Below, piece by piece: positions 15,386-44,107 of a stretch of DNA of 64,000 bases (its first letter is position 1; the number at the start of each line of letters is the position of its first letter). Location of the stretch: NCBI RefSeq assembly GCF_006345805.1, contig NC_042999.1:163308001-163372000 (forward strand), written 5' to 3'. The notes beneath the pieces were generated by a model, which worked only from the letters and a program-made list of their open reading frames with translations, searched no databases and was not told the origin of the DNA. This stretch comes from Octopus sinensis (Eukaryota). A program made the translations under genes and the position numbers.

Positions 15386-15389
15386 TATA

Positions 15390-20289: not shown

Positions 20290-20910
20290 ACCAGTTGGAC
20301 AATTGGACAATAAATACTACACATTAGCTTTCTATAGAAGACTAGCAGGGGGAGGGGACAATGACAAAGTTCTCAAACGTCTGGGCATTGATGAGAATCA
20401 CTTGGCTAGTCTTTCCTGGAGGATCTGTAACCTAGGAACTGATGAATAATTTCTAGAAATCCCTGGACTGGCTGTTCTACCAGGGGTAGAAATGAAATAA
20501 ATTCAACAGTCCTGAAAGTGCAGTCATTTGGGTCTGTACAAGGTGCATATAGAGTACAGAAACCATTCTACATGCACTCATTCTGGCTTGAGGAGTTTTG
20601 CTGAACAGTTGTTGTTGCATGTAGGTCGGATACAGCTGTGGCTGAAGCCCATTGTAAAGCTCACCCTACCACTTTCTTGTGATCAGGAAGAGCAGACACT
20701 TTTTCTTTATCTAATGATTATGGTGAAAGAGAGAATTTCATAGATATGACTGAAAGGACTGAGGGCAGACATCTTCCTCTCCAACGAAGCTCTCATTGAC
20801 TTTTTCAAACTTCACTAGAAGAGATGGTAAGAATAGCGAGGCTGATGTTCCCTTCAATAAATTTGCTGAAAAGTGGGTGAAAGTAGCATGTATGGTTTGA
20901 GTGAAAGGAG
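20290..20910 (+). mobile_element. Highly degenerate L1/Tx1-like LINE ORF2 C-terminus
   Basis: Relic peptides FYRRLAGG..LGIDE.., EQLLLHVGRIQL..IVKL, FLSNEALIDFFK, KWVKVACM; many stops. Confidence 0.4.
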
Positions 20911-21219
20911 TTTCCCTCAGTATGCATCTATATATGATGGAATTAATAGCTGTGAGTGATCACTTATCCTTGGTCAGATCCTAGTCCTGGATTTGTGAGG
21001 CTTCTCGACTAGCCCTACATTATGGTCCCCCTCTTTGGACACACTAGCATACATTTGTATAGTATGTACAAGAATGTAATGTAGTGAGATAAAGCTAAAT
21101 GCTTTGTCTTATTGAGTTACATCCCTTCTCTTAGTTCATATTCAATATATGAGGACTATATTGAAAGTAAAGCAAAATTAGACATAACTGATATAGGTCA
21201 TTCAAATTCCATATGTTGG

Positions 21220-21620
21220 TAGTATAACTCTTCCTTTATACAAAGGTACTACTCAGCGGTCTCTATCACAAGTAATGCATTTACACCATCATTGAATACC
21301 ATTCATGAATGCTCTTTGAAAATATTCAGATGTGCACTGTTGTACCCACTTCTTTACAATCACTTTCACCTCTTCTACATCATCAAATTTTTATCTCCAA
21401 AGATTGTCCTTCAATGGCCGAACAGGTAAAAGTCAGAAGGTGTCAGATTGGGGTTGTGTTGTAGATGGGGAAACACTGGCCATCTAATTTGCAAATTGAC
21501 TGATTTCTTGCCAAAGATATGTGGTCAGATATTGTTCAGGTGAATGTGGATTGTTTTCAGATTTTTGTGTGATCTCTTTCACATATGGCTTCTCTAAGCT
21601 CTCTGAGTGGCTTACCATAC
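21220..21620 (-). mobile_element. Degenerate mariner C-terminal relic
   Basis: Minus-strand PHLQHNPNLTPSDFYLFG resembles PHPPYSPDLAPSDF.LF. Confidence 0.55.
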
Positions 21621-23124
21621 CACTTGCTGTTCACAGTGCAGACATATAGAAAACCAGGGAGAATGATTGGAACCTATTATTTGCCTGCAATAAAGGTCAG
21701 GAGGAAGAGTTACATAAAGAGTTATTCTACTTAGTCAAATGAACAACTCATGTTAGTTAGTGAAAAAGTTATGCCTACTCTTGCATTACTTTCAATACAA
21801 CCATATATCATTCTGCCTTTTCTACTGGAATTGTCATTGGTTGTGGTATAGTTCTAGTATGAATAATATTAAAAGTCAATTGTAAACTAAAGGAGAAAAA
21901 CACAAAATAGATAAATAAATGAAAGCAATTTTTTACTTTCTCAAACTTTAGCTGGTACCAGTTTGTTTGGCAGTTGCAGAAGATCTTTACACAGTTTTAC
22001 ACTGTGCTATGACCAACTTGTGTGTAATATAATATGTTTTAAGATTTCATCTTTGTCTCAGATAGGATGGTGTGATTGTATAATGTTATTTAAATTTTAT
22101 TGTTGTTCATATTTGTGTTTTTGTAAAAATGGAAAGGTGTAATTGTGTTTGCTTAAAATTTTGTTATGTTTGAAAGAATATAAATTTAGGGGAAGATGAT
22201 ATATAACATACAATTTTCATTCTTAAGAAAAGTGATTTTCACTTGATTTAGGGACTCTCCATTACTAATATATCACCTATCCCTTTTGCAGGTGATTCCC
22301 AATCTTTGGCTTTCAGTTTGTCTAGGACCATTAGTTATCTTTGCAGACTGTTAGTTAGATTATTACTAAAGATACCTGACTACATAGGTAAATTCTTCTA
22401 GGAAAATTATCCTTGTTTCTACACAATTATAAATAATAGACCAAACATTGAAAAGATTAAGATTGCTATCCATGAACAATATATTCTGTCATTGTTCATT
22501 TCATAGATCTGCTGTTTCATAATATAAAATTACTCTAATTGACTGTAAATTACAGGGGTCAAATAGTGGCCAAAATTTTCTATTATTTTTTTAAGATTAT
22601 AGTTGTTATAACAATATTAATTTCACATATCTGAAATCATTCACTTGTGAAAGCGAAAAGTAAGTGTTCGGAAACTGAAAAGAAAGTGCTATTTTGTGTG
22701 AATAATTTATCTTATTTATCTTTTTTTCTAAGAAAAAAAAAAAAGAAGAAGAAAAAAGAAACAGAAATGAGTTAATTTTGTATTTGAAGTTATAAAAAAA
22801 TTAATTGAATAATTTCTATTATTTTACCTTGTGGTGAAGCCCTTAATCAATCACTTAACCTGCTAGAAAATGAAACCAAATCTTTATATAATCACACCCT
22901 TCCATCTCACAAAAATGAGAAACAACAAAAACAAAAAGTCTAAATAATTTGATATAATCACACTCCCCCATATTAAATAACAACACAAAAAATACTGAAT
23001 TCATCAAAAAATAGACTCCATAATTAAAAAAACAAACAAACTGGTACTCAATTTGAGAAAGTGAAAGTGGTATGCTACTTAGGGCCTAAATATAACCATT
23101 CTAAAAGAAAGATGGATGGCATAC

Positions 23125-23247
23125 CCAAAAGGGTTATTAAAAGAGATTGCATAGACGACGTTGTTGTGACCATACAGTGTATGAAGTTCCTCTCCAGAGG
23201 CTGTATCCCATATCTTACATGTACGATCATAACTTCCTGTGATGAAA
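23125..23247 (-). CDS. DAW1: DAW1 coding exon 5 ([41 protein letters not shown])
   Basis: 123 nt, TTACAG / GTATGC, WD40 repeat. Confidence 0.97.
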
Positions 23248-23447
23248 CTGTAATAGACAATGAGATCTCCTCATGTTACTGTGTTTGATATTATTCATAT
23301 TACAACATCAACAACAGCATCAGTAGCAGTGACAACAACAACAACAACAACAATAATGACGAGGCTGGAACAACAACAACAGCAGCAGCAGAAGCAGCAG
23401 CAGTGAGAAAAGCAAAATTAACAGCAACAAGAGTTCATCATGGTATT

Positions 23448-24337
23448 CGTCATCTGATCAATAAGTATCCGGACTGTTGCCGTAGTAACAAAGCTAAAGC
23501 ACACAAAGTGAAACCACTTGGCACAGATTGACCTTGAACTCTGCTGAGCATGTGCACTAAGTTTTAACGTTCTATCTCACTTCTGCCGTTTACAGCAGTG
23601 CTTGGAAGGAAGGTATGTAGTGTGTGATTGTCACATCGATTATGACAGAAAGTTGAACAGAGAATCTGCATCAAATTTTGCCAAGAGTTTGGTGATACCT
23701 GCTCAGAGGCCAACACAAAGTTTTCAAAAAGTTTTCCTCATTCTCAGCACAATCAAGGAGATCTTGTGCAACTGAAACCCAAGTGTCTTTTTGGTCAGCT
23801 GAAAGCAGTTTTGGCACAAAAAAGGCAGATACGTGTCTCATACCCAAATCTTCAGTGATAATGGACTGAACTGAACTGTAACTAATCTGCACATCCTCTG
23901 ATACCTCAGGACAATTCGACGATTTCTCCTCATAGCTGCATGCACATCTGCGATGTTTTTCTCAGTTCTGCTGGTTGAAGGTCTCCCAAAATGTTCGTCA
24001 ATATCAACATTTTTTAGGCTATCTTGGAAACGTCTGAACCACTCATACACTTGTGTGTGAAGCATACACTCCTCTCCATACACTTTCTTAAACTTTGCAT
24101 CAGTCTCTAAGCAAGTATTGTCATGACGACGTTCTCTGTCATGGTCAATATGACAATCACATGCTACACACCTTCCTTCCAAGCACTGCTGTAAACAGTG
24201 GAAGTGAGCTAAAATGTTAAAACTTAGTGCTTGTGCACAGCAGAGTTCAAGGTCAATCAGTGCCAAGTGGTTTCACTCTGAATGCTTTAGCTTCATTACT
24301 ATGGCAACAGTCCGGATACTTATTGATCAGACCTCAA
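23448..24337. mobile_element. Mariner derivative made of two inverted 5' (left) ends (about 890 bp)
   Basis: TIR (GAGG)TCTGATCAATAAGTATCCGGACT at both ends; about 280-bp inverted arms. The plus arm reads MTEKVEQRICIKFC; the minus arm continues YEWFRRF..GRPST..VPKLLSADQK. Confidence 0.85.
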
Positions 24338-24371
24338 TGTAATAACAATAGTAAAAACAATAGTAATTATT

Positions 24372-25870
24372 ATTTCTAACAAAGGCATAAAACCTCATTA
24401 ATGGAGAGTCAGGTTGTTTATATCAAGAACAGTATTTGCCTGGTACCTTCTTTTATTGATCCCAGAAGATCCCAGGAGGATGAATATCAAAGGTAATCCT
24501 GGTGGAATTTGAACTCAGAACATAAAAGAATATAACAAAACATTTTGTCCTATACATTACTGATTCAGCCAATCCACCAGTTTTTAATGGTTTCTAATTT
24601 GGACATAATGTCATAAGATTAGGGAAGAGGTTTAATTGATTTAATTGACTCCCTCAGTAATTGACTGGTAATTATTTTTTCTCAGATCAGGAATATCATA
24701 ATGTAAAGCTGATCAATGTGATTTAAATTCACAAAATAGTAGGAATAAACTAAATACTATTAAACATTTAGTTTGCAGTTTTATTACTGCTGCCAAATCC
24801 ATAGGCATTAGCAAAAATAATATGATTTGTGACATAGACACACGATCATAAAGTATTGAGGACAGATGAAAGGTAGTTAACCTCATCAGGTTAAATACCT
24901 TTAATCAAATTTAAATATATAACATATAATGGATGTTACTAAAACAGCACAAACTGTCATCCATCACTCTATCACTTCAGCCAATTCACCTAAATATAAT
25001 AACTTATTATTTCATAAGACACCATAAATTTACAATGGAATCAGCTGATAGTGGTTGACTGATACTTTTTTCCAACCCAGAAGGCATGGAAGGTGAAGTA
25101 AATGTCAACAGGAATTAGAAAACAGAACATATAGGAACATAACTAAATACCACCCCAAAACCACACAACAATTCATTCAGCACCCAAAGAATCCTGATGC
25201 CATCCACTTCTTTAAATACAATATTACTAAAAAAAAAAAGCAGTAATAGCAACAAAACCACCTGTTGAATTGATAAACTAGGCTACAAGAGTGGGATATA
25301 ATTGAATTGGATCCCCCTTAGTATAAAATTGGTACTGCCTTGAGCTATTAAGGGAACTTCTATATGGTCACTCAATCTGGAAATCACAGCCAAATTTCAC
25401 TCAAATCACATCCATCTTGGAAAACGACATACTGGATATGTGGTTGTGATTTTCTTGTATTCATGATGGGCACAGCTGAAATGCTTTTGGCCATAGGTTT
25501 ACTTAATCAAGACTGACCAGTGGTTAAACAGCAACAACTACTATTGTCAGGGGTGGTGGAGATGTCAACCCAGTAGGACTTGAAAACAGAAGGTAGAAGA
25601 GCTGTATTAAATACAGTCTCTACTCTTTAACTAGGAGAAATAACTGTAATATTAACAGTAATAATGATTTCATCCATGGATTTAGAGTCTTACATTTACA
25701 GGAGAAGGATGTAGTCCACTACATAACCAGAAATGATTCTGGCTTAGAGGAATGTAAACTAAAGTTGGGTCAGATTTGATTTGAATCTAGAATATAGATG
25801 GCAAGACTAAATACTGCAAAACACCTAATTTGGTACTCTGCTATTTCTGTCATTCCACTTTCAGAAACAG
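24372..25870 (-). repeat. Cluster of at least six degenerate SINE family C-like units, head to tail
   Basis: Recurrent GA(A/T)TTGAA(C/A)..AGAA(C/T)ATA motif near 24510, 24720, 25112, 25578 and 25779, separated by CAA/TAA-rich spacers. Confidence 0.55.
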
Positions 25871-27096
25871 CAGTAGTAGCAACTACAAAATCATCAACCC
25901 CAGTAACAACAATAGTAATTATTTTTTTTAATTGACACAGGACCACAAACTCGCAGTATTTGATTAACTAAATAGATATCACAATACTGACATAACTATC
26001 CCTGATGAACCTACAACTTCCTTGCTTTCATTTCCTTATGTTTGCATATCAACCCTGCCTAAGCTAACTTAAAGAGTTGGCTCTCTGTTGAGTCAACCAG
26101 CTGATATTTTTCATTCAACTATCTCTTGTAGTAACATGACCATACCTCTTTATTTCACTGTTACTAAGAACCATCTTGTTGGTGCCATTTCAAAACAAAT
26201 TTTCCCAATGACAGGCTAGTTATATGAACACAGTGACTTGAAATTCAGTTTGTTAATGCCGTGCACAACATTCTATTCTTGTCTTCTTCCCTGACAAGAT
26301 CAACCATCTTGCTTCATGATTTTGTTCTTACATAGGTAGTTGTTCACATTTTCTTACCTTTTGATATTACAGCTCTATCTAATATTCTATAGCATCACCA
26401 TGTCATTTACTGTTTGGATAAGAGTCTGTTTAAGCTACAGCTTACAGCAGGTTGTCTCTTAGGAATGTCCAGCTGTCTACTATATTATCTCCTTTTCCAG
26501 CCTCTCCATCCTGTGGAAACACGTGTGACCTAGTACTGAGATTCCATCATAGAGGGATCTTTTAACTGGACCTTTTTTCTCCTAGTTGTAATTTACTTCC
26601 TAATCTTCATTCTCAACCTGAAATTGTTAAAACTAGTTAAAGTTAAAGGTAGTGCCTTTTTCGTCAAGGTAAGAATAATTTCTCACACCATTTGTCTGTC
26701 CCTTTTTCTACTAACAAAAATACAGTCTGATCCTTATGTTCACCTGAAAAGTGTAAGTGACTAATAGCTTTCCAAAGTTTAAGTTTCAAATGATATAATT
26801 ATTTGCATCCCAAAATTCAGAAGCCTTCTTTTCTAACATCATGGTCATAACTTCCTCTATACTTGTCCTGATGTTTTCCAACAGAAACATCAAAATCACA
26901 AGGTCAAAAAGTAACTTGCTCAAGAGTTTTTCACAAGAGCCCTTTCAATAACAATAAAATAAGAGTAAAACAAGCAATTATAGCACCAACACAACTACTA
27001 TAACTATCATAACATGACCACCACCAACAACAATAATAGTAACATTACACCAGAAACTATATATATAAACATCAGGCACAACAACAAAGAGCTTAC

Positions 27097-27097
27097 C
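27097..27097 (-). other. DAW1: Position marker only: 3' end of DAW1 exon 4 (phase 2)
   Basis: TG|GTAAGC joins T of exon 5 to give the Cys codon TGT. Shows the frame check used throughout. Confidence 0.9.
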
Positions 27098-27155
27098 ATG
27101 AACCAGACTTGTTAAAAGCCACATTAGTCAGTGGTAATATGTGGGCTCTAAGTAC
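27097..27155 (-). CDS. DAW1: DAW1 coding exon 4 (VLRAHILPLTNVAFNKSGS-C)
   Basis: 59 nt, TTACAG / GTAAGC. Near-identical to recalled VLKAHILPLTNVALNKSGS. Confidence 0.97.
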
Positions 27156-27939
27156 CTGTAAGTAGAAATTCATGCAAGTTAGATAATGGTTTATTTTCTT
27201 CTTATCTGTTACCATTCTGTAATTAATAAACTGTCCTTATCAACTTACCCTTCATTATATATCTTATTCATTACAAGACTATTTAGTTTATAATGTATTT
27301 ATAGTGTATTAATGGGTATAAAAATACATCAGGATAAATATTTATTAATCCCAAGCACAAGTATGATAAATAGAGTAATCAGTTCTATTAACTACAAGAG
27401 ATTCACGGGATGCTAGATGCAACATCCATATCTTGTATAAGGGCATTTATTAATAGAGCAAGTGAAAGAGCTAAAACTAGACTCATTACACTGGGAGTTT
27501 GTGACATAATCTCATCTTCACAGAGTGAAAGCTCCAACCTTATATAACATTAAGTGGATAAGTGATGTATCTTCCTCTGGAAAAATTGTTATTATTGCAG
27601 GATACAACATTCATAATAAATCAATTGAATTTAATTAAAATGTAGGTATGACTGTTTTCTTTAATTGAATTAGCATGTGGATTTAATTGTCTTCTTTAAT
27701 TGAATTAGCATGTACATTTAATTATCTTCAGAGAAAAATTTTCTGGAACTGGTAGGACCTGTGGAAATTCCACAGTATAAGTCAGAGTACATTTGAAAAC
27801 ATTATGTTAGTAGTTAGAAGTTTCAAAAAATTCTTTTGATAAGGAATTGCTTATTTACATTGGACAGATATGATGTGCTTTACCGTTTAAGGAATGATGA
27901 ATTAAAAAGATAAAAATTTATTCATAATATATTGATTAT

Positions 27940-28290
27940 TTGACTGCGGCCATGCTGGAGCACCGCCTTTAGTCGAGCAACTCGACCCTGGGACTTATTC
28001 TTTTTGTAAGCCCAGTACTTATTCTATCAGTCTCTTTTTGCCGAACTGCTAAGTGACGGGGACATAAACACACCAGCATCGGTTGTCAAGCAATGCTAGG
28101 GGAACAAACACATATATATATACATATATACGACAGGCTTCTTTCAGTTTCCGTCTACCAAATCCACTCACAAGGCATTGGTCGGCCCGGGGCTATAGCA
28201 GGAGACACTTGCCCAAGATGCCATGCAGTGGGACTGAACCTGGAACCATGTGGTTGGTAAGCAAGCTACTTACCACACAGCCACTCCTGC
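27940..28290 (-). mobile_element. SINE family A
   Basis: Complete head and core; tail partly truncated. Confidence 0.88.
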
Positions 28291-28630
28291 GCTGTAAATG
28301 TTTATTATTTACAATTTTTATTAAATGACTGTCCCTGTATCAGAGAGGAACTGAACTCTTCTGAAATGAAATGTAAGCTGGAGTCATTTGGAGTCAGCTT
28401 CTTGTGAGGTATCAGGAAGAGTTTTCCTTCTTATGTATCTGTTATTGAAGTGGCTTCAATGCAATTATTGTGGAGGCTGACACATCCTACACATAGTAGA
28501 TGCTTATTTTTTGAAAAATAATCCTTTTCATTCTTTCTCTTTTTAGCTAATGTTGCCAATCATTGTCCATGTTTTATAAACAAATGCTTTGATTGTGCAA
28601 GAGATAATTAATTGTGTAGTGATGCTGCTG

Positions 28631-29046
28631 TGTAAGGTTCAGTGCACATGCGCAGAATGAGATTACTTCCGGTTGGCCACCGGAAGTCTTCCCCATGCGC
28701 ATGTGCAGGAAACTGACCCCTAAAATGCGGTTCGCTCATTCATTCTTTCTGGCCCTAGCAGCACTCAAGAACGGACGTGTACTGGCAGTCTCTGAGGACT
28801 TCATACCAACCAAGCAGCGAACCACAACGAATCATTTCGACTAACAAACAAGAATCAGTACTACAGATTTGGCTGTCGGTTTCCCTCCAGAGAACACGTA
28901 CACCAGTTCTACATTACGACGAGAAATAAACAACATTTTTGCTATGTTCGTAGATCACCTGATTTGTCTGTTATTTTAACTAAAATTGAATGAGACGGGA
29001 TCAGATCGGACACCCCTCCAGTGATACCGAAACCGATCCTGTTACA
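28631..29046. mobile_element. Solo-LTR-like element (416 bp)
   Basis: TGTAA...TTACA termini, AATAAA at 28925-28930, GC/CpG-richer than flanks. No clear TSD. Confidence 0.55.
28643..28707. promoter_or_regulatory. Dyad-symmetric NRF1-ETS-ETS-NRF1 motif cassette
   Basis: TGCACATGCGCA 28643-28654, ACTTCCGG 28665-28672, CCGGAAGT 28680-28687, TGCGCATGTGCA 28696-28707. Confidence 0.6.
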
Positions 29047-29094
29047 ATTGCATTAAAGCTTATGCATAAAATGAAGGAATTTTTAAAAATAAAT

Positions 29095-29848
29095 ACCAGC
29101 GACCGAGACCTTTGGAAATATTCTGTACATGAGAAGACCAGGCAGGACAAGTGAGCCCAGCCCACTTATGAATGCCTTTCCTCCCTTGGACACAAAGACC
29201 TGTTGAGGCAAGCGAAGTCGATATAGAACCTCATCCGACGACAGGCACCCATGCCAACCCCCTCTGCTTGCGAAGACATGTTGGGGCAAGCGAAATCGAA
29301 ATCGAAACCGAATTGAACCAGCCAGGATCCCTGGTCTGGTGGTACGTAAAAAGCACTATCTGACTCGTGGCCGATGCCAGCGCCGCTTCCACTGGCTTCC
29401 GTGCCGGTGGCACGTAAAATACTCCAATCCGACCGTACGACAGGCACCCATGCCAACCCCCTTTGCTTGTGAAGACATGTTGGGGCAAGCGAAATCGAAA
29501 TCGAATTGAACCAGCCAGAATCCCTGGTCTGGTGGTACGTAAAAAGCACTATCCGACTCGTGACCGATGCCAGCACCGCCTCGACTGGCTTCCGTGCCGG
29601 TGGCACATAAAATACACCAATCCGACCGTGGCCGTTGCCAGCCTCGCCTGGCACCTGTGCAGGTGGCACGTAAAAAGCACCCACTACACTCACGGAGTGG
29701 TTGGCGTTAGGAAGGGCATCCAGCTGTAGAAACATTGCCAGATTAGACTGGAGCCTGGTGCAGCCTTCTGGCTTCCCAGATCCCCGGTCGAACCGTCCAA
29801 CCCATGCTAGCATGGAGAACGGACGTTAAACGATGATGATGATGATAA
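29095..29848 (+). mobile_element. RTE LINE 3' end with tandemly duplicated 3' UTR
   Basis: ..DRDLWKYSVHEKTRQDK* then UTR; 199-bp tandem unit 29240-29438 / 29439-29630; (GAT)n tail. Confidence 0.88.
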
Positions 29849-30199
29849 CAAACTACACTGTTTTCTGTTCAGCCACCAACAAAGCTTGGTCCAAGTTAGA
29901 TACCAGTTGAGGATATTTTCATTTCATTTGGGTTCAGCTATTTGTATATCTGTTACTATATCTCTCTATTTGCATAGCTTACGATATATCAGTAGGCTCA
30001 CTGACCTGCATGCCTGTCTGTAGGTCTAAGTAACTATCATATCTACTTTACCTTCTGCCGATATCTGTTTAATTTCATAATACCAATAAGCATTTAAACC
30101 TAATAACAAAAAAAAAAAAAAGGAATAGCAACATTGCCCCAGCATGGCTACAGTTTTTAGTCTGGAACACATAAAAGTGTAACATCCACAGCTACTGGA

Positions 30200-30900
30200 T
30201 TTCTTCTGTTTGGCTTCACTTTTTGAAATTTTAAAACTAAGTGAAAATTTTCAAATTTGGTATATTTATGTAATTTTTCATGCTGAATCTGATGTTGTTA
30301 TTCACTCGTTTCAAGAAAAATTTTTGAAAAATGTTACTGAGGTTTAAAGTGTGATTATTTTTACCTAATCAGAAAACAGGATTTGGAAGCTGGCATTTTG
30401 TATGTGATGACATTACAACGACTGATGACATAATGATGACAAAACATTCAATGAAGGAAATTTTAAGTTTTAATGAGTAAAGTCATGTGAAATGTTGGAA
30501 CAGGCATGTAATGCAGAAAATTGCCAAAAAAAAAAACAAAAATAAGACACTGAAACTGAACATTAAATTACAAAAAAAGCAAGCTGTAGTTCAGTTTGTG
30601 TAAAGAATACATATTTTCTTTACACAAGTTGGCTGAAGTCATACTTCTATTTAGGTTTAAAATGCCCAGGAAAACACATATAAACCATTCGTTCCTCAAA
30701 AATATATGGATGGTGGTTGGCAAGCAGACTATCAGGACTGCAACAGATGAATATAAGCAGGAAAATACAACCGAAAATATTAATTTGTTTGTCAGACAGC
30801 AACAGATGGATAAATGCAGGAAAACACAACATAAACTACATGTAGTTAAACAGGACAACAACAGGCAGGTAAGCAGACTACGCAACAGCTTGGCTTGTTA
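30200..30900. repeat. Unclassified interspersed repeat (probable DNA-transposon relic)
   Basis: Inverted homologues at 53340-53570, 53740-53915 and 54290-54420. Confidence 0.55.
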
Positions 30901-31217
30901 TTATGGCTAAAATGGCCCAAAATTTGTAAACTTTAGAAACTATTAACTTTTTATTTATTAAATTAGGCCAAAATGAATTTCATTTTCATAATTAGCATAC
31001 AAAACTACATCAATACACCAAATTTGAAATCAATTGGAACAAAATCAAAGGAATAGAAAAGTGAAAACGAAACAGAAAAGGTTTTCCCCATCCCCTTTCT
31101 ATATATATATATATATATATTTCTCCATTCAAGTTATAATTTCTCTTGATTATATAAGTATAACACATGGAAAAGAAAAAGAAAAAAAATCAAGCAAAAT
31201 AATAATATAATACTTAC

Positions 31218-31270
31218 CTTGAACAGGTAAAACTCATGGTTTATAGAGAGTGACAGTTTTTCCTGTAAAC
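31218..31270 (-). CDS. DAW1: DAW1 coding exon 3b (R-LQEKLSLSINHEFYLFK)
   Basis: GTAAGT donor at 31217. Start 31270 gives C|GT TTA CAG GAA = RLQEK as in the recalled ortholog. The acceptor is non-canonical (AA); alternative starts are 31264 (AC) and 31262 (AG). Confidence 0.85.
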
Positions 31271-31725
31271 TTACTTGAAGTTAAAGAATTTTAAATAAAG
31301 AACAATTGGCCATCATTTTAGACATGATTCAAAAGTCTTTCAAATTCAACACATATATAGATCAATGATATCTTTTTTATTAATAGAAATATTAAAATTA
31401 CTAAGTCTCTCTAAAGGAGATTACGGCAGCGTTACTGGAAATTAATAGTTATTGCCATACTAATATGGCAGTCATATAAATATAAGACTAAAGCTGTCGC
31501 TGATTAGCTCCAAGAAGCCACCGCCTTATATTTATAAGACTGCCATATTAGTATGGCAATAACTATTAATCTTTTTTATTGTTTTGATTGTAATGTCTAC
31601 TCTAAACACACGTCAACCACTACCAAAATCATTTACCAGATTTCTGTTTTTCTGTATCTAATCTCAATTACCAAATCCTGCATAAACCAATCAAGAAAAT
31701 ATTGCATATATTTGTGTGTGTGTGT

Positions 31726-31759
<34 letters not shown>

Positions 31760-33124
31760 AACTAAATTATCATCCCAATATCTTCTCTTTTCAAAAGCCA
31801 CGTGATACCATGATGGACACTGTCGTTGTCTGATTAAAATGTTCACTCACAAAAATGTAGTTTTAGAACCACTCTCACTTTATTACCACACAGTGTAGAT
31901 AAGTGTCTTCTACCATGGCTTCTGTTTGACTCAAGCTCTGTGAATGAAAGTTGGCAGACAGAGTCTGTATGAAAGCCTATCAGAGGGACAATCTTTGTTG
32001 TTGGGATGTAGACTTATACTGTCACCTGCTTTAATACCACCATCCGGAGGTGCAATGGCCCAGTGGTTAGGGCAGCGGACTCGCGGTCATAGGATCGCGG
32101 TTTCGATTCCCAGACCGGGCGTTGTGAGTGTTTATTGAGCGAAAACACCTAAAGCTCCACGAGGCTCTGGCAGGGGATGGTGGTGATCCCTGCTGTACTC
32201 TTTCACCACAACTTTCTCTCACTCTTACTTCCTGTTTCTGTTGTACCTGTATTTCAAAGGACCGGCCTTGTCACTCTCTGTGTCACGCTGAATATCCCCG
32301 AGAACTACGTTAAGGGTACACGTGTCTGTGGAGTGCTCAGCCACTTATACGTTAATTTCACGAGCAGGCTGTTCCGTTGATTCGGATCAACCGGAACCCT
32401 CGTCGTCATAACCGACGGAGTGCTTCCATCAATACCACCATCTAGCCTTTGGGTATCCTTTTCAGAGTACACACTGTTGAAATCATTTGAACCAAGTTTC
32501 CAGAGTCAATTTAAGTTCTCCTTTCTTCACGCTTGTAAAACCTGGAAATGGATTATGAATGCTGTCTTTCGAACTCTGATAACAGCATCAAAAGAAGGAA
32601 AGTCAAGATGTTGGCAGCTCATATTTCCTCATCAGCACTGGAAATGCGTTCAAACCTGAGACACCTAACTTGGCTGTTTATGTAACTGTAAATATCAGTG
32701 TGGCTGATCAGAGGAAACACAGGTAGTACAGTAAAATTAATTAATGGTGGTTTGGAGAGACAAATTTTTATTCTATGAAAAGCAGGTAGAATATAACTGT
32801 AAGAGAACTGGATTACATTAGACTTACCTAAGTAATCAGAGAATAAACTTACTAAAATTGCATGTAAAACCACAAAAACTGTCCTTCATTCATAAACCTC
32901 ATGTATAATCTAAATGACTCTATAAAGTGAGAGTGAAATTCAACCTGAGTAATGGAGCATTGTTTTTCTAAAGCTTGGACAGATAAATCTATTTAGCATA
33001 CCCAGATTTGGACATAATATCCTGTTTCTTCATAGGATAAAGGCTAGTGAGTATAGGGATATTCATGACCTGACTGCTATTGAGAAATAATGTAAATTTA
33101 TGACAGAAATTAGCAAAAGGATAT
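31271..33124 (-). other. DAW1: U12-type (minor spliceosome) intron of DAW1, probable AT-AA termini
   Basis: 5' ATATCCTTTT at 33124. Branch-site-like TTCTTTAAC at 31288-31280, followed by TTCAAGTAA| and exon 3b. Confidence 0.8.
32046..32430 (+). mobile_element. tRNA-derived SINE family B
   Basis: A box TGGCCCAGTGG, B box GTTTCGATTCC, 12-bp TSD AATACCACCATC (32033-32044 / 32431-32442). Confidence 0.92.
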
Positions 33125-33216
33125 GAGAAACAAGTGTCTTCAATTGGCCTGATTTTGCTGCAGTAACTAATGGTTCCTTTAAGGTGATCTCATCTACAAG
33201 AGCATCAATATTGGTA
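33125..33216 (-). CDS. DAW1: DAW1 coding exon 3a (TNIDALVDEITLKEPLVTAAKSGQLKTLVS-R)
   Basis: TTGCAG acceptor, 92 nt, followed by U12 donor ATATCCTTTT. Homologous to recalled [30 protein letters not shown]. Confidence 0.9.
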
Positions 33217-33385
33217 CTGCAATGGATATCATTACATCTGATATAACAATATATAATAATATACAACAATGTACAATGTTTTATATCTATATCCATACAC
33301 AAACACACAGATACATGTGTGTGTGCATGTGTGTGTGTTCAACCTATACCAGCATGGAAAATGAACCATTCAATGATGATTAGGT

Positions 33386-33411
<26 letters not shown>

Positions 33412-33417
<6 letters not shown>

Positions 33418-33580
33418 AATAAGAAAATGGAGAAATACATCCAAATCAAATATCAATTACCAGATAATACCCAATCACATACTTTATTAAACCACCACAT
33501 AAGAAACTTTAAGGTCACTAGCAGTATATTGGATATATGTTATCCCATGGAGGGTTGCATTTACAACCCCTATCTCAATT

Positions 33581-33582
<2 letters not shown>
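33412..33582. mobile_element. Penelope-like pLTR fragment between (TA)n tracts
   Basis: TACAAAATAAGAAAATGGAG start joined to inverted GCAGTATATTGGATATATG..AACCCCTATCTC, as at 3430-3495. Confidence 0.55.
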
Positions 33583-33606
<24 letters not shown>

Positions 33607-33617
<11 letters not shown>

Positions 33618-34108
33618 GGCAGTTTGTCTGTCTGTGTGTCTGTCAGGTTGTACCCTCACCCTGACCACGGCTTTCAACCGATTCTGATGAAACTTGACAC
33701 ACACATAGCCCAATGTCATAATTCAAAACTAACACAGCGAAAATTTTGAAAAGTTCCCCCAGTTCTGAAAAAAATCGATAAATTCGACATGGAGTCGAGA
33801 ATCTAAGCTTTTTATATGCAACACATTTTCTGTTGTAGTTTTCGCAACTTACATTTGGGCGAACAGTGCTTCGCCCACGGTCAACTCTACGTGGGCTGTT
33901 CACGCGTTGGGAGGCGCAATGATGTTTTCATGTTTTCGCCCAAAGGGACAGCTAGGAGCATCGTATACACAGAAGTATTCGAGTGAAGAGAAGACATTGC
34001 AACCTACACATGCGCCTTCGTTCCCTAGAGGGAAAGGACTAGATTGGGATTAGTCGTTGCCTACTAGGGGCTCTTACATACCCGGGTAATGCCGGGCTAT
34101 GCTGCTAG
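33607..34108 (+). mobile_element. Non-autonomous Helitron
   Basis: 5' TATATAAACGGCAGTTTGTCTGTCTG; 3' hairpin CCCGG-GTAATG-CCGGG (34081-34096) followed by CTAG|T. Confidence 0.75.
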
Positions 34109-34149
34109 TATATATATATATATATCATCCTAATCATCATCATTATATA

Positions 34150-36245
34150 TATAAATCATCATCATCATAATCTAAAATCCATTTTCCATACTGGCATGAG
34201 TTGGACAGTTTAACAGGAACAGGGAAGTCAGAAGACTACACCAAGAATCTGCTGTCTGTACTGCCATAGTTTCTATGGCTGGATGCCCTTCCTAACACCA
34301 ACCACTTTACATAATGTACAGGGTGCTTTTTATGCAGCACTAACAGCAGCAGTGAGGTCACCAAGTAACTTACAGGACAAGACTCTTCAACTGGATGGGG
34401 GAGTACTATTGAGGGGTAGAAAGGTGTCTTGCATTAGAAGAGGGAAATGGCTTCTTCAGATGGAGAAGGTAGAGAAAAGAGAAACAAAGTGAAAATGTGA
34501 TAGAGAGGACAGGAGTCGTTCACTCGAGTTACAGAGGGGGAGTATATAGTGGAGTGAAGAGGGTGAGTAGGTGAGTGAGTTCACAAGATTTTGAAAGGAG
34601 AGAGAGAGATAGAGGAGCTGGGTGGGGCTCAGGGTGAGGGTGGAAATTAACAGGAGCATATTGTGTGAGAGTGGGTAGGTGGACACATGATGGACAATAG
34701 AGGGGAGGGGGAACAAACAACGTTGGTGAGCATGAAAGGGTTGTGAAGAGGGAGGGGGTTATGGATATGGATTTTATTTTGATGGGCAAGTCTTCTCAAA
34801 CGCATCATATCACCAATTGTTTCAGTCCTTTGTTGTTTCAGCAAGGCTCAAACTCTGAGGATCATTTCTCACATCTCCCTCTTCCACAAGTTCCTCCCAC
34901 ACTTAATGATTTACACTTCTTTAAGAAGCTGTCCTCATCCATATGCATCATATGACACACACTCCTACCTGCACGCTATATTTGTCATTGTGCTCAATAC
35001 TGACTTTCTCCTTACTGACAGCTTCCCTGTACATGGCTTGAACACTTCTCACCAACTACTCATCTACCATTAGCGTCTGCATTGACCACCAGATGAGTGA
35101 GCAAGGGACCCTGTCAAAGGCTTTCTCCATGTTGACAAAAGCCAAGTACAGCAGTTAATTTTTTTTTTTTTAAGTTCTTCTCCTGAAACTGCTTCACCAG
35201 CATCATTAGTGCTTCTCCCTGGAACAAAGCCAAACTGTATCTCATCGAGATTAACTTTCTAATTAATTGAGCTATGATCAATTTTGTAACTTTCATCACC
35301 TGGTCCAGCAACCTGATACCTCTGCAATTACTTCTGTCTGAGACATCACCTTTCCCTTTGTAGAAGTTGACTACACAAGTTGTTGAGTATGACCCCTTCC
35401 TGAACAACTTGATTCACTATACAGGTGACTAGGCCATATCCTACCCCACTGTATATTTTAACAATCTCAGCAGTAATTCCTGAGGGGTCAGGGGTTTTCT
35501 CAGTCTTTATATCCTTAATTGTTTTATCTATCAAGATGCTGTCAACTCAGAAAGCTGGTCCCTTAGCTGGGTCCACATTGGATAAACTCTTCTTCTCCCA
35601 TGCATTCTCCACATTTAATAGCCTTTCATAGTGAGACTTCCAAGCCTCTTTCTTTGCAGAATCACTAAATGCAAGTGCGCCATCATCCATCTGAACACAT
35701 TTCTCTCCTACAACATCATGATTTTCTCTGATATACTGTCTTGCAATCCAGAACACATCATGCCTTTGGTTCTCATGCTGCAGAACATTGGCAAACTTCT
35801 TCCTTTCAGCTTCTCCCTTGGCTAAATATGCCTGTCACTTAGCTTCTCTTCTAGCTACCTAGTATAGTTATCTGATACCCCAACCCTTCCAGTCCTCTCA
35901 AGCCTGATTCTTTCCACTAATGGCTCTGTCTACTACACTGTTCCACCACCTTTCCATCCTAGGTCTGGTTGGGACTTTGCACCAGTTACAAGTTTAGTCT
36001 GTGGCTCTCAGTAAGTTGTACCATGGGAACTTCCAGTTGTTCTCTATGTTAAATGTCTGTAACTCCTCTTCCTTCTTGGCAAATGCTTCAGTTATGACAG
36101 CTTTTACTATTCAAAGGATCCATAAGCTTCCAAATCCTTCTTTTCCAGATTGGTCTGCTTCTTGGAACCCTTCTAACCTGAAGTCTGAAGTCACTATAAC
36201 CTATGCTGAGGAGTACATTCATCGCCTGGGAAGGTCTTTGTGTTC
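34150..36245 (-). mobile_element. RTE LINE copy with internal deletion of the RT core
   Basis: EN-linker, WW.., KKEAWKSHYERLLNVEN, KTPDPSGITAE, YLAFVNMEKAFDRVP, then a jump at about 34958 from VQVGV to HMMHMDEDS; 3' UTR and (TGA)n tail. Confidence 0.85.
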
Positions 36246-36249
36246 ATGA

Positions 36250-37030
36250 GCGGATGGAACTGTTCAAATTGTGGAATACACCCATAAGTGTTTTGTGTGG
36301 GAATATAGTCAGATCAGTCGAAGGTTCAAATGCAGCTGAGGGATTAAAACAAAAAATGTGTTTTCTCGGATGAACTGGGCTGCTGTACAAAAACAAAGGC
36401 AAAAATTGTGGTAAAACAAAGTGCAACACCTGTATATAAGCCAAAACATAATGTACCATTCACAACACTAGAACAGGTAAGTAAGGAACTTGAAAGACTT
36501 GGAAGCCTAGGAATAATTGAAAAGACAGATTGCTCACATTGGGCAGCACCTACGGTCTATGTAAAAAAGGAAAATGATAAGTTATGAGTTTGTGCAGATT
36601 TTTCAATGGGTTTAAACAATTGCTTAAGCCCACATAACTACCTATTGCCAAGCCCTTAGGATGTGTACACAAAGATGAATGGAGAGAAATTCTTCTCAAA
36701 AGTAGACCTCTCAGAGGCATATGTACAAATCCAAGTAGAAGAAGAATGCTCACATTTATTAGCCATTAATACACACCTTGGCTAATTTAAATTTAAGCGG
36801 CTTCCCTTCAATGTAAAAGTTACTCCTCCCATGTTTCAACAAGTAATGGATACAATGCTGTTGGGCTGTAATTTTGCTATTGCCTGTTTAGACAATATCC
36901 TAATAAAAAGTGAATCACATGAACAACATGTAGAACACATAAAAAAGGGTATTCAAAAAGATAAGAGGAATATGGTTTTAAGTTAAGTGAAGAAAAATGT
37001 GAGTTCTTTTTGAAAAAATTAAATACTTGC
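36250..37030 (+). mobile_element. Ty3/Gypsy (K02A2.6-like) RT fragment
   Basis: VFSDELGCC..VPFTTLEQV..WAAPTVYVKK..VCADFS..FSKVDLSEAY..RLPF..FQQVMD..CLDNILI with stops. Confidence 0.88.
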
Positions 37031-38665
37031 ACACCACATCCGATGCTTCTTATGTCTAACACTTCTCTTGGGGCACTTACACTCTGTCATGTATGCACAC
37101 TGACATTACACATCCAGCGGATCATGCTAGCTTAATTTCTTTCAAGCCTAAGCATGTCTTCAGCAGTCACGGCCCACGTTTCACTGCCGTGAAGCATGGC
37201 AGTTCGCACACATGCATCATACAATCTACCTTTCACTCTGAGTGAGAAGCCCTTTGTCACCAGTAGGGTAGAAGGTTTCTGAACTTTGCCCAAGCTATTC
37301 TTATTCTAGTGGTAACACTCTCTGACCCCCACTTACAGATTTAGGTAGCAGAAGTTATCAACTGCTTATAGTTTCTCACCCTGCATGTGATGGAATCTGT
37401 TTTCTGAGCATCTGTGGTGTTCATCGCCCCTGTGCATCTGCTGCATGTGAAAGCTATTTTCCTGATTAATCTTCCTTTGATGTTGCTGCACTTCTTATGT
37501 GTCCATAGCTTACACTGGGTACATCTTATGGAGTTTCTACCTACACCTTTTCTACAGATCAAGCAGGGTCACCTACCAGAGGAGGTGTGTGATGAGTTCA
37601 CCTTCCTACTTACTAGAACTTTGGTCTTTGCTACATTGACTCTAAGGCTTTTTGATTCTAAACCTTGCTTCCACACCTGAAATTTCTTTTCTAGTTCCAG
37701 TAGTGATTCTGCTATGAAGGCCAGGTCATCGGCATAGAGGAGTTCCCAGGGGCAACCTGTCTTGAATTCCTGTCATTGCTTGGAGGACTATGATGAATAA
37801 CAGGGGACTGAGGGCTGATTCTAGATGGACCCCTACTTCTACCTGGAATTCTTCACTATATTCATTTTCAGTCCTAACCCTACTGACGGCATCTCTGTAT
37901 AGGGCCTGTACAGCCCTTATTAACCATTCGTCAATCTCCAGTGTCTGCATTGCCCACCAGATAAGGGATCAGGGGATCCTGTCAAAGGCTTTCTCCAAGT
38001 TCACAAAAGCCAAATATAGGGGTTTCTCTTTGGCTAGGTATTTCTCCTGCAGTTTCCGTACGAGGAATATAGCATCAGTGGTGCTTCTACCTGGCACAAA
38101 ACCAAACTGTATCTCAATCTAAGTAGACTCTCTCCCTAATTAGTTGGGCTATGACCCTTTCTGTGACCTTCATCACCTGATCCAGCAGTTTGATACCCCT
38201 GTAGTTATTTCTATCTAGAGCATCACCTTTACCCTTGTAGCAGTTGACTATGGTGCTGCTACGTCAGTTGTTGGGTATGACTCAGTCATGAACTACCTGG
38301 TCTACAATACGGGTGACTAGGCCACAGCCCACACCACCAGATGTTTTAAGCATCTCAGCAGTGATTCCTGATGGGCCAGGGGCTTTTCTTGATTTCATAT
38401 CCTTAATTACTTTATCTACCAGGGTGCTATCGATTTGGGTAGCTGGTGCCTCAACTAGGTCAACATTTGGCAGGCTCTCCTCCTCCCATTCATTCTCCAC
38501 ATTCAGCAGTCTTTCATAATGGTATCTCCAAGCCTCTTTCTTTGCAGAATCATTAAAAGCAAGTGCACCATCATCCATGCAGACACATTTCTCTCCTGTG
38601 ACATCGCTATTTTCTCTCACTCACTGTCTTGCAATCTGGAATACTTCAGTTCTTTGGTCCTCACA
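37030..38665 (-). mobile_element. RTE LINE ORF2 fragment (RT plus PHD-like finger)
   Basis: KAPGPSGITAEMLK, FGFVPGRSTTDAIF, YLAFVNLEKAFDR, VGVHLESALSPLLF, LYADDL, CRKGVGRNSIRCTQCKLWTHKKC..FTCSRC, LHGSETW; 3' end truncated. Confidence 0.92.
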
Positions 38666-38667
38666 TT

Positions 38668-39158
38668 GCTGGACGTCAAACAGAATTAAAAAAAACTCAA
38701 ATAGAAGAGAACACTAAGAATTTAAATGTCACTGAAAGAAAAACAACGCAATTTAACATAGTTAATTACATCAAATCAAATAAAAGTTCAGCTAGAATTA
38801 GAACAAAGATTATGTTATCTAAAGGTGTAAATTGTAATAAAGAACTTGGTGGAAATGAATTTAATTCTACAATGAATGATCAAATTAAAACTAAATCTGA
38901 GTGAAATATAAGTGATTGTCTTTGTAATTTTTCTAAACAGGAATCCTGTTATTTGAAAAATAAGTGTAAGACTAAAAATGCAATATATAGATGTAAAGTT
39001 ACATCTGGGGGTAATGAATACTTTTACATTGATAGGATATCATTAATTAAGGAGACTGGCAAATTATTTGAGTTCATTTAGAGATAAAAATAGAATATTC
39101 CAAACTAGTGTTAGCAAATTAATCTGGTTTATTAAGGACAGAAACAAAGATTAGATTA
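38668..39158 (+). mobile_element. Penelope-like (Naiad/Chlamys-type) GIY-YIG endonuclease relic
   Basis: DCLCNFSKQESCYLKNKCKTKNAIYRCKVTSGGNEYFYID, frameshift, then KRLANYLSSFRDKN..TSVSKLIWFIKD. Confidence 0.7.
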
Positions 39159-39177
39159 TTTGTTATAATCCTTAACA

Positions 39178-40965
39178 TGTTGGATTATTATAACGCCCAC
39201 TTCGGTATATACTATACTTAGTAAATCAGTAAAGACACAACTATCTCTGACTGCCTACTACATATTCTCTTTACTTATAGTAACTAGATTATTCCATTCA
39301 TCACATGGGAAGGGTGTACCATTATTACTAATTCCCTACATCTCCCTTTTTAAGTTTTTCTTAGGAAGTGTCATTTTATTTCACAATAATATTTTTATTC
39401 ACCCCACTTCCTTTTTTTGAGCTCTTTTTTCGAACAATTTAATATTTTTTTCTCTTGGTATCTATTTTCAGGAATTCTGTATGTTTTCTTTTCCTTTCAC
39501 TTGTATGCCTAGGTTCAATCCCCTGCAGTGGCATTGGTACTTGGAACATATTGTACAGCCATTCCATAGCTTCCTCCAACTTCTTTGGTTCGCTTTCCAT
39601 GAATCTCTTTTTCACTTGGTTCCTGTGTCTCTTTTGTATACCTTTTCTATTTTTTACTCGATACATCATTTTACCTATGCATTTGGTAATTACGCCATCT
39701 TCACAAATTTTCTTTTTATTCTTGTATGCTCTCATATACACCTTTTCACCAACTTTAAAGAATTTTGCTATGTCTTCCTTCGCACTTTTTCTTTTCTTGC
39801 CAGGTAGTAATTTATCAAAGACTGATTTTACTTTCTTTGCAAACATCAGATCCACTGGTGATCTACCTGCTGATGTATTCGGATTTGGTGTCACATGGTA
39901 CACTCTTAAAAACTGTTGTAGAGCTACCTCATCTGTGACTTCCTTATTCAATTTTCTAAGAGCTTTTTTGAAGGTATCAACAAAGCATTCTGCCTATCCA
40001 TTAGATCTGGGAGATATGGCACCATATGCATTGGGACTCCTTTTTTCACACTGTATATTGTCAGAAACATGCAATGCTCTGCTTGCAACCAGAAACGTCT
40101 TCCATGGATAAATCTATGGAACTTCTTGCCACCAAATATGATTCTCAACACCTCTTTTTCTATCTGACTATAATTCTTTTCAGCTGGCAATAATGAAGTT
40201 AAAGCATGGGCTATAGCCTTTTTACTGCCATTATCATATTTATGCAGAAGTGTGGCTCCTACACTTGCATCTGTAGCCAGTATAGTCTCCAACTTTGGAT
40301 CAAAATGTGTCAGTCATAGGTCCGAAGTTAAAATACTTTTCAATTCACCGAATGCCTTCTGGCACTTATCCATCCAACACCATTTTGTATTTTTTTTCAA
40401 CAGATCATTGAGTAAGGCCCTTACGTTATGTACGTTTGGAATGTAGATTTGGTAACAAATTACCAAACCCAAAAATGCCTGCAGTATGGTTACATTTTTT
40501 GGTGTGGGCATATTCTTTATTGCTGTTGCCCTTGATGGGTCCGATTTTTTCCTTTTTTGTCTATTACTTGTCCTAAGTATTTGATTTTATTCAACAAGAA
40601 CTCAAATTTTTCCTCTGTTAACTTGAACCCATATTCGCTTATTTTCTCAAATACTCTTTTAATGTGTTCAAAGTGTTGTTCCTGTGATTCACTCTTTATT
40701 AAAATATCATCTACATAGGTGATAGCGAAATCACAATCCCTCAACACTGCATCCATTACTTGTTGAAATATAGCAGGAGCCACTTTTACACTGAAGGGAA
40801 GCCACTTAAATTTAAATAAGCCACAATGTGTGATAACTGTTAATAGATGTGAGCAATCTTATATTTGTATTTGTAGATAAGCCTCCAAGAGGTCTAATTT
40901 TGAGAAGAATTTCCCTCCATTCATTTTTGCAAACACTTCTTCCAGACTTGGCAATGAGTAGTTAT
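39178..40965 (-). mobile_element. Ty3/Gypsy (K02A2.6-like) 3' part: RT, RNase H, partial integrase, PPT and 3' LTR
   Basis: APAIFQQVMD..YVDDILI; LATDASVG..AHAL..YSQIEKE; YHVTPN..GRSPVDLMF; PPT AAAAAGGGAGA (39351-39341) then TGTAGGG. The left boundary of the LTR is approximate. Confidence 0.88.
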
Positions 40966-40973
40966 ATGTGACT

Positions 40974-41405
40974 GTGGAGGCGCAATGGCCCAGTGGTTAG
41001 GGCAGCGGACTCGCGGTCATAGGATCGCGGTTTCGATTCCCAGACTGGGCGTTGTGAGTGCTTATTGAGCGAAAACACCTAAAAGCTCCACGAGGCTCCA
41101 GCAGGGATGGTGGTGATCCCTGCTGTACTCTTTTACCACAACTTTCTCTCACTCTTACTTCCTGTTTCTGTTGTACCTGTACTTCAAAGGGCCGGCCTTG
41201 TCACTATCTGTGTCATGCTGAATATCCCTGAGAACTACGTTAAGGGTGCACTTAGCGGTTCGGCAAAAGAGACCAATAGAATAAGTACTGGGTTTACAAA
41301 AGAATAAGTTCTGGGGTCAATTTGCTCGACTAAAGGCGGTGCTCCAGCATGGCCACAGTCAAATGACTGAAACAAGTAAAAGAGTAAAAAAGAGTAAAAG
41401 AGTAA
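40974..41405 (+). mobile_element. Chimeric SINE: family B 5' part fused to family A 3' part
   Basis: Family B sequence to ..TTAAGGGTGCAC (about 41250), then family A CACTTAGCGGTTCGGCAAAAGAGACC..AAGTAAAAGAG tail. Confidence 0.85.
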
Positions 41406-41465
41406 TACTCTTTTTTTGAGTTCTAGTTTTCCTGTTTGCATCACTAAACCTATATATATATTACC

Positions 41466-41491
41466 AAGCCTGTATGTACATATGTATGTAC

Positions 41492-41522
<31 letters not shown>

Positions 41523-41585
41523 TGTATGTATGTATGTATGTATGTATGTATGTATGTGTATGTGTGTGTGTGTGCGTGTGTGTGT
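41466..41585. repeat. (TATG)n/(TG)n microsatellite
   Basis: Direct reading. Confidence 0.97.
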
Positions 41586-41929
41586 ATAGATATTGGTGCT
41601 GGTGCCATGTTAAAAGCACCCAGTACACTCTGTAATTAGAAGAGCATTCAGCTGTAGAAACCAAGTCAAAACAGAATATGGAACTGGGTGCAGCCCCTGG
41701 TCTTGCAGGTGATGTCAAGCCATCCAACCCATGACAGTATGGAAAACAGACATTAAATGGTGATGATGTTATTACTATTACTATATTTATCCTACTTTAT
41801 ACTGGCACGACTCAGTGCGACCCCAGAAATCTGCTATCACCAGTCGGCATCATTAGGCTGTAGCTGGCAGAATAAAAAAAAGGGGCTTTTATCGGCATAT
41901 TCAAAAGATTTCCCATAATCAAACTTAAA

Positions 41930-41980
<51 letters not shown>

Positions 41981-43789
41981 TACATGTATATATATATATA
42001 AAAATGCACACATAAGTACATATAATCATCATCAGTATTTTACGTATATTTTTCCATGTTTGCCTGAGCTGGACAGGTTTATCAAAGCAATGTTTTACGT
42101 CCGAATGCTTTCCATGCTGCCAGCCCTCTATAAACTAGGATACACACATATATAAATTCACATCCATACACACATATACATAAATGCTGGAAATATACAT
42201 CTCAGGAAAAAAAAAACATGATATTTCATGTGTGAGAGGATTTTTAAAGAATTCAAAGTAAATTGGCAAAAACATTTACATATATTGCTAAATGTTGATA
42301 TTTTAAAATATTCCATACTTGAATCTATTTAACACAGTAAAACAGAGGTTTTGACATATATATCAAAACATAACAAACATTAAAGTATTACTGGCATACA
42401 AGTCAAATGCTGTAGTATTATGGGTTTCTTAAAGTATATCTACTTTAAGTAAGATATACAAATTGCTGTTTGGAACTTATACTGTTTCTGTCGCTAATAA
42501 CAAACTTTTACCCAGCTTGCTGGTGCAACATCAGTGATTTGTTAATCACTTTTTTTCTATACCAGTAGACAAAAAATTTGTCTAAGCATGCAGTTGATTG
42601 TGTATACTTGCTACCAATGGCATGCAAATACATAGAAATCCTGGGTTCTAGCCATTCTACTACCACTGCCTGACAGTTTTTCTCTGCTACTGATAGTACA
42701 TTTTAGTATTATACATCTATAAGAAATACAGAGTGATATCAAAATTAATACTGTTTCCTTTGTTAATAATGAGTATATAAGCCAAACAAGAATGTACAGT
42801 ATGTCCATAGATTCTCTAACCTTCCACTTTTTGTTAGGAACGGCATAATTAAGAACATATCCATTAGGATCTCTAATCTTTCTGCCAATCAAAAGATACT
42901 TGGAAATAATGCAGAATATTACAATGAAGTGGTTATGATCAAGCAATATCATACCATGATAACACTAAACTTAAGTAGTGGGTACTTGCATTAATAACAC
43001 TTCCATTTTAATTTTAATGAGTTCACGCCCACCGATGACTGCAGCGAAATTCATCTTTGGACTTTCTTCTATCAAAGGCATTCTAACAAAAATGCTTCCA
43101 TATAAACGGTCAAAATATTGTCAATTTCCCCAAACAGGGACACAATTCAATTTTTAAACAATAACCAAAGCTCCTTCTCCCAAAGGGGGAGGGTTACAGT
43201 TTACAATTATTTAACAAATGCAACACAACAACGTTTCTCTTACGAGGAACCAACAAACGTGATAACAATAGTTAAACACTAATAATAATAATAACAAACC
43301 TTATGGTGAATCAAAAAGCAGTACACAGTTGAAGCTATAGTCCTTTATGTATAAGAAATAAACCAACAGCAGTACTCAGTAGAAGCGACTGTTCGAGAAA
43401 ACAGACATTACATACAGCCAAACTTCATATAGATACTTAATGCTAGCTAATTAGCAGATAATCTAATGTAAAAGCCGTGGTAAAGGGTATGTGCACAGCT
43501 CCATCTGGACTATTCCATTTCTGCACACTAATTTTATTTTTAATTTATTCCCATTCATGTGAAACCACTTATTCAAGTTTGAGTCATTGATGCAATTTTA
43601 TACCAATTGCTATTTTTACTTTTAATTGTTATGTTACGATTTAATTTAGTTTGATTTTAATTATTACTTACTACATATAATTCAATTGTTATTATTATCT
43701 CTAATTTTTATTGTTAAAGTGAAAGTATCTGACATAAAATAGAGAAATGTTTTTGTTTCACTTTTAACACGTAATACTGAAATAGTGGA

Positions 43790-43968
43790 GAAGATATGAT
43801 ATTGCTATGGGCTTGCCCTAGGCAAGAAGTTGAACATTTTTTTTGCCCATGAAACTACATGGACCCTAAGTAAGGTATATGTAAAATTTGAACGAAATTG
43901 GTTGTGTAGTTCTCAAGTTTTAGGGAAACACACAGACACACATTCTCAGTTTTATATATATAGAGATA
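43790..43968 (-). mobile_element. Helitron-type 5' fragment
   Basis: Minus strand begins TCTATATATATAAAACTGAGAATGTGTGTCTGTG, a typical non-autonomous Helitron start; 3' end not identified. Confidence 0.55.
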
Positions 43969-44052
43969 ATTTATTGTTCACTGACTTCACTCTATTTTCT
44001 ATTTATTTTTCTTAATCTAATACTACCTCATGATATCTTGTACATGCACACA

Positions 44053-44107
<55 letters not shown>

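Follow-up and report, generated by a model that had tools for sequence, protein, structure and literature searches.

The window, that is the whole 64-kb stretch of DNA analysed here, carries on its minus strand the gene DAW1 (WDR69). Coding segments were located by tblastn with a human DAW1 sequence as query and were then joined in a manual boundary model. The reading frame is open across 10 coding segments, from 55851 to 5637, and encodes 292 aa. The predicted protein combines the N-terminus MKLKRFLxRYYPPG...RLQEKL...LRAHILPLTN with WD40 repeats; its best matches are named DAW1, and animal and protist proteins that bear the name dynein assembly factor with WD repeats 1 align with it over the full length at 65-74% identity. 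The third exon is in two parts, separated by the intron studied here (a slash marks an exon border):

5637..55851, minus strand: DAW1 gene from exon 1 to exon 9, in 10 coding segments, 292 aa; its 3' end falls outside the window, past the window's start
33125..33216, minus strand: exon 3a, 92 nt, ending ..GTT TCT C in phase 1 (tblastn and manual model)
31271..33124, minus strand: probable U12-type intron, 1,854 nt, termini AT...AA (from its signals and from U12 introns that split this codon, likewise in phase 1, in orthologues)
31218..31270, minus strand: exon 3b, 53 nt, GT TTA CAG GAA .. TTC AAG/gtaagt (tblastn and manual model)

Read on the minus strand, exon 3a closes with ..AAG ACA CTT GTT TCT C (last base 33125), the intron starts from 33124 with ATATCCTTTT and ends with TTCAAGTAA (last base 31271), and exon 3b opens at 31270 with GTTTACAGGAA / GTTTACAGGAAAAACTG. 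An earlier sequence-only reading had proposed at this place a minor-spliceosome intron with probable AT-AA ends, and its coordinates and strings are correct to the base. So is its sum of 145 nt for exons 3a and 3b (92 + 53), which equals the undivided exon 3 of the gray whale; exon 3a also starts where whale exon 3 starts (acceptor ccattgcag/TACC). The motif KLLIQRLQEKL, which that reading gives for human DAW1, is present in the human protein (P0125), and the single 145-nt exon 3 that it gives along with the motif holds for the gray whale, the gene checked in place of the human one.

Repeats account for more than a third of the intron; they include a (GT)n tract and two elements:

32046..32428, plus strand: SINE with tRNA-like head, antisense to DAW1 (repeat comparison)
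31372..31570, no strand assigned: repeated MITE-like element with 46-nt inverted arms, 98% complementary; several copies at 8193-8777

Further SINE copies lie at 40976-41251 and 53919-54284 (plus strand), the three copies being 93-95% identical. Within the window, the SINE head gave no tRNA call by ARAGORN and no Rfam match. Intron 1 of DAW1 contains decayed retroelement ORFs and a piggyBac-like DDE_Tnp_1_7 fragment (48394-50410 and 51214-52265, plus strand). The ORFs encode a reverse transcriptase, and there is a weak match of RVT_3/RNase H-like type. Among named sequences, those closest to this reverse transcriptase come from two octopods, Argonauta hians and Octopus bimaculoides, a slight hint that the window derives from a cephalopod-like mollusc.

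Splice signals of the 1,854-nt intron

Two sequence elements at the ends of the intron resemble those of minor introns:

33116..33124, minus strand: U12 A-type 5' splice site ATATCCTTT, 9/9 to RTATCCTTT
31280..31288, minus strand: branch-point sequence TTCTTTAAC, 8/9 to TTCCTTRAC, the best branch-like motif within the last 45 nt

The branch-point sequence differs from the consensus TTCCTTAAC by a single C>T, a change that would still permit a G-U pair with U12 snRNA. From the branch A (31282 or 31281) to the last intron base there are 10-11 nt, and the 3' end, which reads ..aaaattctttaacttcaagtaa/, has no polypyrimidine tract before the splice site. In U12 introns the branch lies about 10-20 nt from the 3' splice site, with an optimum at 11-13 nt, and introns with non-canonical ends can be spliced (PMC3584512). 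At the junction with the best support the ends are AT-AA, which is neither AT-AC nor GT-AG; this non-canonical subtype has been documented and is compatible with membership of the U12 type (PMC1557818, PMC10639083).

Taken alone, the two motifs are unremarkable. The donor 9-mer occurs in only 2 copies on both strands of the window (128 kb of strand), or at about 1.6e-5 per strand position, and branch motifs with at most one mismatch number 20 in the window, equal to shuffles (about 1.6e-4 per position). Both motifs, however, sit exactly where the protein homology breaks off and resumes, which we do not attribute to chance; a rough joint estimate is below 1e-6. The eight other DAW1 introns are all GT-AG (8/8), with donors that are mostly GTAAGT-like and branch matches of 4-6/9. 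In none of the eight do a donor and a branch site that both look U12-like occur together; the only one with a U12-like donor is intron 1. The weakest U2-type donor of the gene model is that of intron 6 (ATT/GTTAAG, 19027-19032, minus strand), which was placed by homology only (..TAEI/VCLSF..).

Intron 1 was considered as a second U12 intron. Its donor GTATCCTAT (55803-55811, minus strand) matches the U12 donor at 8/9; its best branch-like motif TTCCTTCTA (44288-44297, minus strand), 12 nt from the AG, reaches just 6/9. The donor of intron 1 is plain U2-type in coral, rotifer, whale and chytrid, and the amphioxus acceptor has a plain pyrimidine tract (exon 1 lies outside that locus). Given this branch and the U2-type character of the readable orthologous introns, we class the candidate as ambiguous; intron 1 is probably U2-type or 'hybrid'.

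Concerning the intron between exons 3a and 3b, its sequence strongly supports the U12 type. This agrees with the sequence-only reading, by the 9/9 donor, by the 8/9 branch at its short distance without a polypyrimidine tract, and moreover by U12 orthologues in amphioxus and coral. An Rfam scan of the 64-kb window revealed no RNA family and no snRNA.

The same intron position in other organisms

Genomic loci of DAW1 orthologues were retrieved and the proteins were mapped back onto them. The intron position was found in the following states:

Branchiostoma lanceolatum (L001, 8168-10873): U12 GT-AG, phase 1, GTC AAG A/GTATCCTTTG ... ATCCTTGAC TTAGTCATTAG/AA CTC CAG
Acropora digitifera (L002, 6205-7084): U12 GT-AG, phase 1, ATC ATC A/GTATCCTTAA ... 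TGCCTTGAC AAGATCTCCAACAG/GA TTG CAG
Rotaria socialis (L003, 3338-3406): 69-nt U2-type intron, GTAAAT..GAG, identical position and phase
Borealophlyctis nickersoniae, a chytrid (L010, 836-907): 72-nt U2-type intron, GTAAGC..CAG, identical position and phase
Gray whale (L006): no intron, exon 3 in one 145-nt piece
Catfish Clarias magur (L008): no intron
Trematode Calicophoron daubneyi (L007): intron absent
Cockroach Diploptera punctata (L009): no intron

The amphioxus and coral introns lie just where the window intron does, splitting in phase 1 the R/K codon before L-Q. Their signals read GTATCCTTT...TCCTTGAC-N11-AG in Branchiostoma and GTATCCTT...GCCTTGAC-N14-AG in Acropora, the latter with a spacing of about 15. 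Like the window intron, both have a U12-type donor TATCCTT, no pyrimidine tract, and a branch site (CCTTGAC/CTTTAAC) near the 3' end. They differ in being G-type GT-AG introns with 12-16 nt spacing, whereas that of the window belongs to the A-type and ends in AA at 10-11 nt. The introns of Rotaria and the chytrid are unlike all of this, being short GTAAxx...YAG introns devoid of U12 signals; presumably they are U12-to-U2 conversions or reflect an ancestral U2 state.

As judged from the intron sequences, the window organism has U12 character in common with both a cnidarian and a cephalochordate, and this comparative result is new. Since the position is shared with a chytrid, it predates animals, and the U12 introns of amphioxus and coral together with the U2 introns of rotifer and chytrid, and its absence from whale, catfish, trematode and cockroach, mark the intron as ancient and lost in vertebrates, not as a lineage-specific oddity. 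The DAW1 intron is, on these comparisons, ancestral and not a local gain. The sequence-only reading had noted that human has no intron here, which accords with whale and catfish. Because the cnidarian and amphioxus introns are GT-AG U12 introns, the window lineage seems to have changed both terminal G's to A, from G-type to A-type. As a separate observation, the chytrid DAW1 shares three intron positions with animals (in the R codon, after YYPPG and after LDL-xxT; L010), so these positions appear at least as old as the opisthokonts.

Choice of the 3' junction

Acceptors from 31282 to 31252 were enumerated if they left the frame open with the AT donor, and the GT-AG alternative was added. The sites that bear on the choice are:

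31271..31272, minus strand: probable 3' terminal dinucleotide AA, the sole acceptor giving both VSRLQEKL and the modal 88-aa span
31265..31266, minus strand: canonical AC that is in frame and competes with the AA, at 16-17 nt from the branch A; would give VSQEKL, with R and L lost
33130..33131, minus strand: weak GT, CTT/GTTTCT, the donor that a GT-AG-only predictor would take
31263..31264, minus strand: AG of the 'tttacag' acceptor; with the GT at 33131, in-frame loss of VSRLQ

The peptides of the candidate junctions were scored against an HMM built from 106 DAW1 orthologues:

AT-AA, first exon base 31270, 10-11 nt from branch A: VSRLQEKL, 129.1 bits
AT-AG, first exon base 31273, 7-8 nt from branch A: VSLSLQEKL (one residue more), 121.0 bits
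AT-TT, first exon base 31267, 13-14 nt from branch A: VSLQEKL, 120.5 bits
AT-AC, first exon base 31264, 16-17 nt from branch A: VSQEKL, 116.9 bits
GT-AG (33131/31263), first exon base 31262, branch distance not applicable: TLEKL, minus VSRLQ, 109.5 bits

AT-AA reaches 129.1 bits, compared to at most 121.0 for all 11 other open-frame junctions, a margin of at least 8 bits. When 33125 is joined to 31270, ..TLVSRLQEKL.. reappears with the spacing of the orthologues: from YYPPG to AH[IV]LPLTN the span is 88 residues in 75/106 orthologues, and AT-AA yields 88. In 74 of these 75, R or K stands at the junction, and all 75 have L right after it. In view of the HMM score, the orthologue span, the R/K-L conservation and the branch distance, AT-AA is the best-supported productive junction. 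We infer these ends, since protein searches for the window species or a close relative gave no protein or transcript above 74% identity. Protein conservation thereby sides with the 'probable AT-AA' of the sequence-only reading, and we too consider the AT-AA termini probable.

Several other junctions were rejected. AT-AG at 31275-31274 lies just 7-8 nt from the branch A and adds a residue (121.0 bits). If the AT donor is paired with the AG at 31264-31263, translation leaves the frame and runs into a stop; with this donor the acceptor 31262 is absent from the open-frame candidates. Shifting both borders by 1-2 nt produces TA-AG or AT-GT ends and forfeits the U12 donor.

The serious competitor is the AC 6 nt downstream, which may serve a minor isoform. 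Were it the main site, the intron would run as AT-AC from 33124 to 31265 and the protein would read VSQEKL; were both sites used, two in-frame isoforms 6 nt apart would result. The AC is in frame and is what an AT donor canonically pairs with, its 16-17 nt are workable and within range of the Acropora orthologue (about 15), and the choice of U12 3' sites has been described as error-prone (PMC3584512). Its use, however, would remove the R/K (74/75) and L (75/75) columns, costs 12 bits in the HMM (116.9 vs 129.1) and exceeds the 11-13 nt optimum (PMC3584512). Moreover, the 6 nt in question, GTTTAC, code in frame for exactly the conserved Arg-Leu, for which we estimate a chance of p ~0.02. We therefore hold main or joint use of the AC to be unlikely. 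Dietrich et al. 2001 reportedly showed that any last base works provided that the penultimate base is A; C is reportedly the most active terminal base, which counts against use of the AA.

Ends of the AT-AC type would also result, at an unchanged junction, if base 31271 were an assembly error or a polymorphism. One A/C difference would suffice, and MSH3, with AT-AA in human and AT-AC in mouse, demonstrates that the two states interconvert easily (PMC1557818). Set against this, the window gives no sign of low quality here and AT-AA is itself a recurrent natural state (PMC10639083), so that we give this explanation very little credence.

Just as improbable is removal by the major spliceosome of a GT-AG intron 33131..31263, which would leave the DAW1 of this species devoid of VSRLQ. 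The GT at 33131-33130 and the AG at 31264-31263 are present as the sequence-only reading had them; they are in frame and remove these five residues, and tttacag/G is a reasonable acceptor core. The donor CTT/GTTTCT, however, agrees with the U2 consensus at almost no position, while the other DAW1 donors are mostly GTAAGT-like. There is no pyrimidine tract, the peptide scores 20 bits below AT-AA (109.5), and nothing would explain a perfect U12 donor plus a branch site of a kind that coral and amphioxus also have.

Proposed splicing and its meaning

The explanation that probably fits best is an ancient phase-1 intron of DAW1 which is removed by the minor (U12-dependent) spliceosome and cut after AA. 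The donor ATATCCTTT would be recognised by U11 and U6atac, and TTCTTTAAC would pair with U12 snRNA. The 3' cut would be set by distance, approximately 10-12 nt downstream of the branch A and after AA, and the join of 33125 to 31270 would make C/GT, the Arg codon in the conserved motif R/K-L-Q-E-K-L. The splice signals, the U12 introns of orthologues and the fit at the protein level are observed, and from the DNA we infer that the AA site is in fact used and that splicing depends on the minor spliceosome.

Introns of this kind are known elsewhere. Non-canonical ends occur in about 5% of the U12 introns of human and mouse, among them 3 human and 4 mouse cases of AT-AA (Sheth et al. 2006, PMC1557818), and many of them have been mis-mapped by canonical-only pipelines (PMC1557818). 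In a survey of more than 3,000 genomes AT-AA was the commonest non-canonical minor terminus in animals and plants alike (Larue & Roy 2023, PMC10639083); molluscs are relatively rich in minor introns (PMC10639083). RASGRP4 and FLJ21106 of human and mouse, and human MSH3, resemble the window intron in having an ATATCC donor, a U12 branch and a 3' end one base off AC (PMC1557818). The documented AT-AA introns differ in that they belong to other genes and another phylum and are supported by transcripts, whereas that of the window is known from sequence alone. Our literature search found no paper tying DAW1 to minor introns.

In human cells CENATAC promotes removal of A-type (AT-AN) minor introns (de Wolf et al. 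2021, PMC8280824). Introns of this class, whose termini are like those in the window, are there spliced less efficiently on average and show more basal retention (PMC8280824). This behaviour in human cells is the sole general support for the idea that the intron is 'rate-limiting'; as a hypothesis, the AT-AA intron might limit DAW1 expression or cilia gene dosage. We consider it improbable that AA and AC are both used, giving two DAW1 isoforms with and without Arg-Leu, and that the change from G-type to A-type made expression of this cilia gene depend on A-type-specific (CENATAC-like) factors. If true, axonemal dynein assembly would have a control point that is regulated and particular to this lineage.

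For annotation, a canonical-only predictor would cost the conserved motif five residues (GT-AG) or two (AT-AC), or would break the gene model. A single intron position is found in five states: as a G-type U12 intron, as an A-type U12 intron with AA, as a U2-type intron, lost in vertebrates, and lost in trematode and insect. The known picture of minor splicing is unchanged by the DAW1 intron; its value lies in annotation and as an example of minor-intron evolution.
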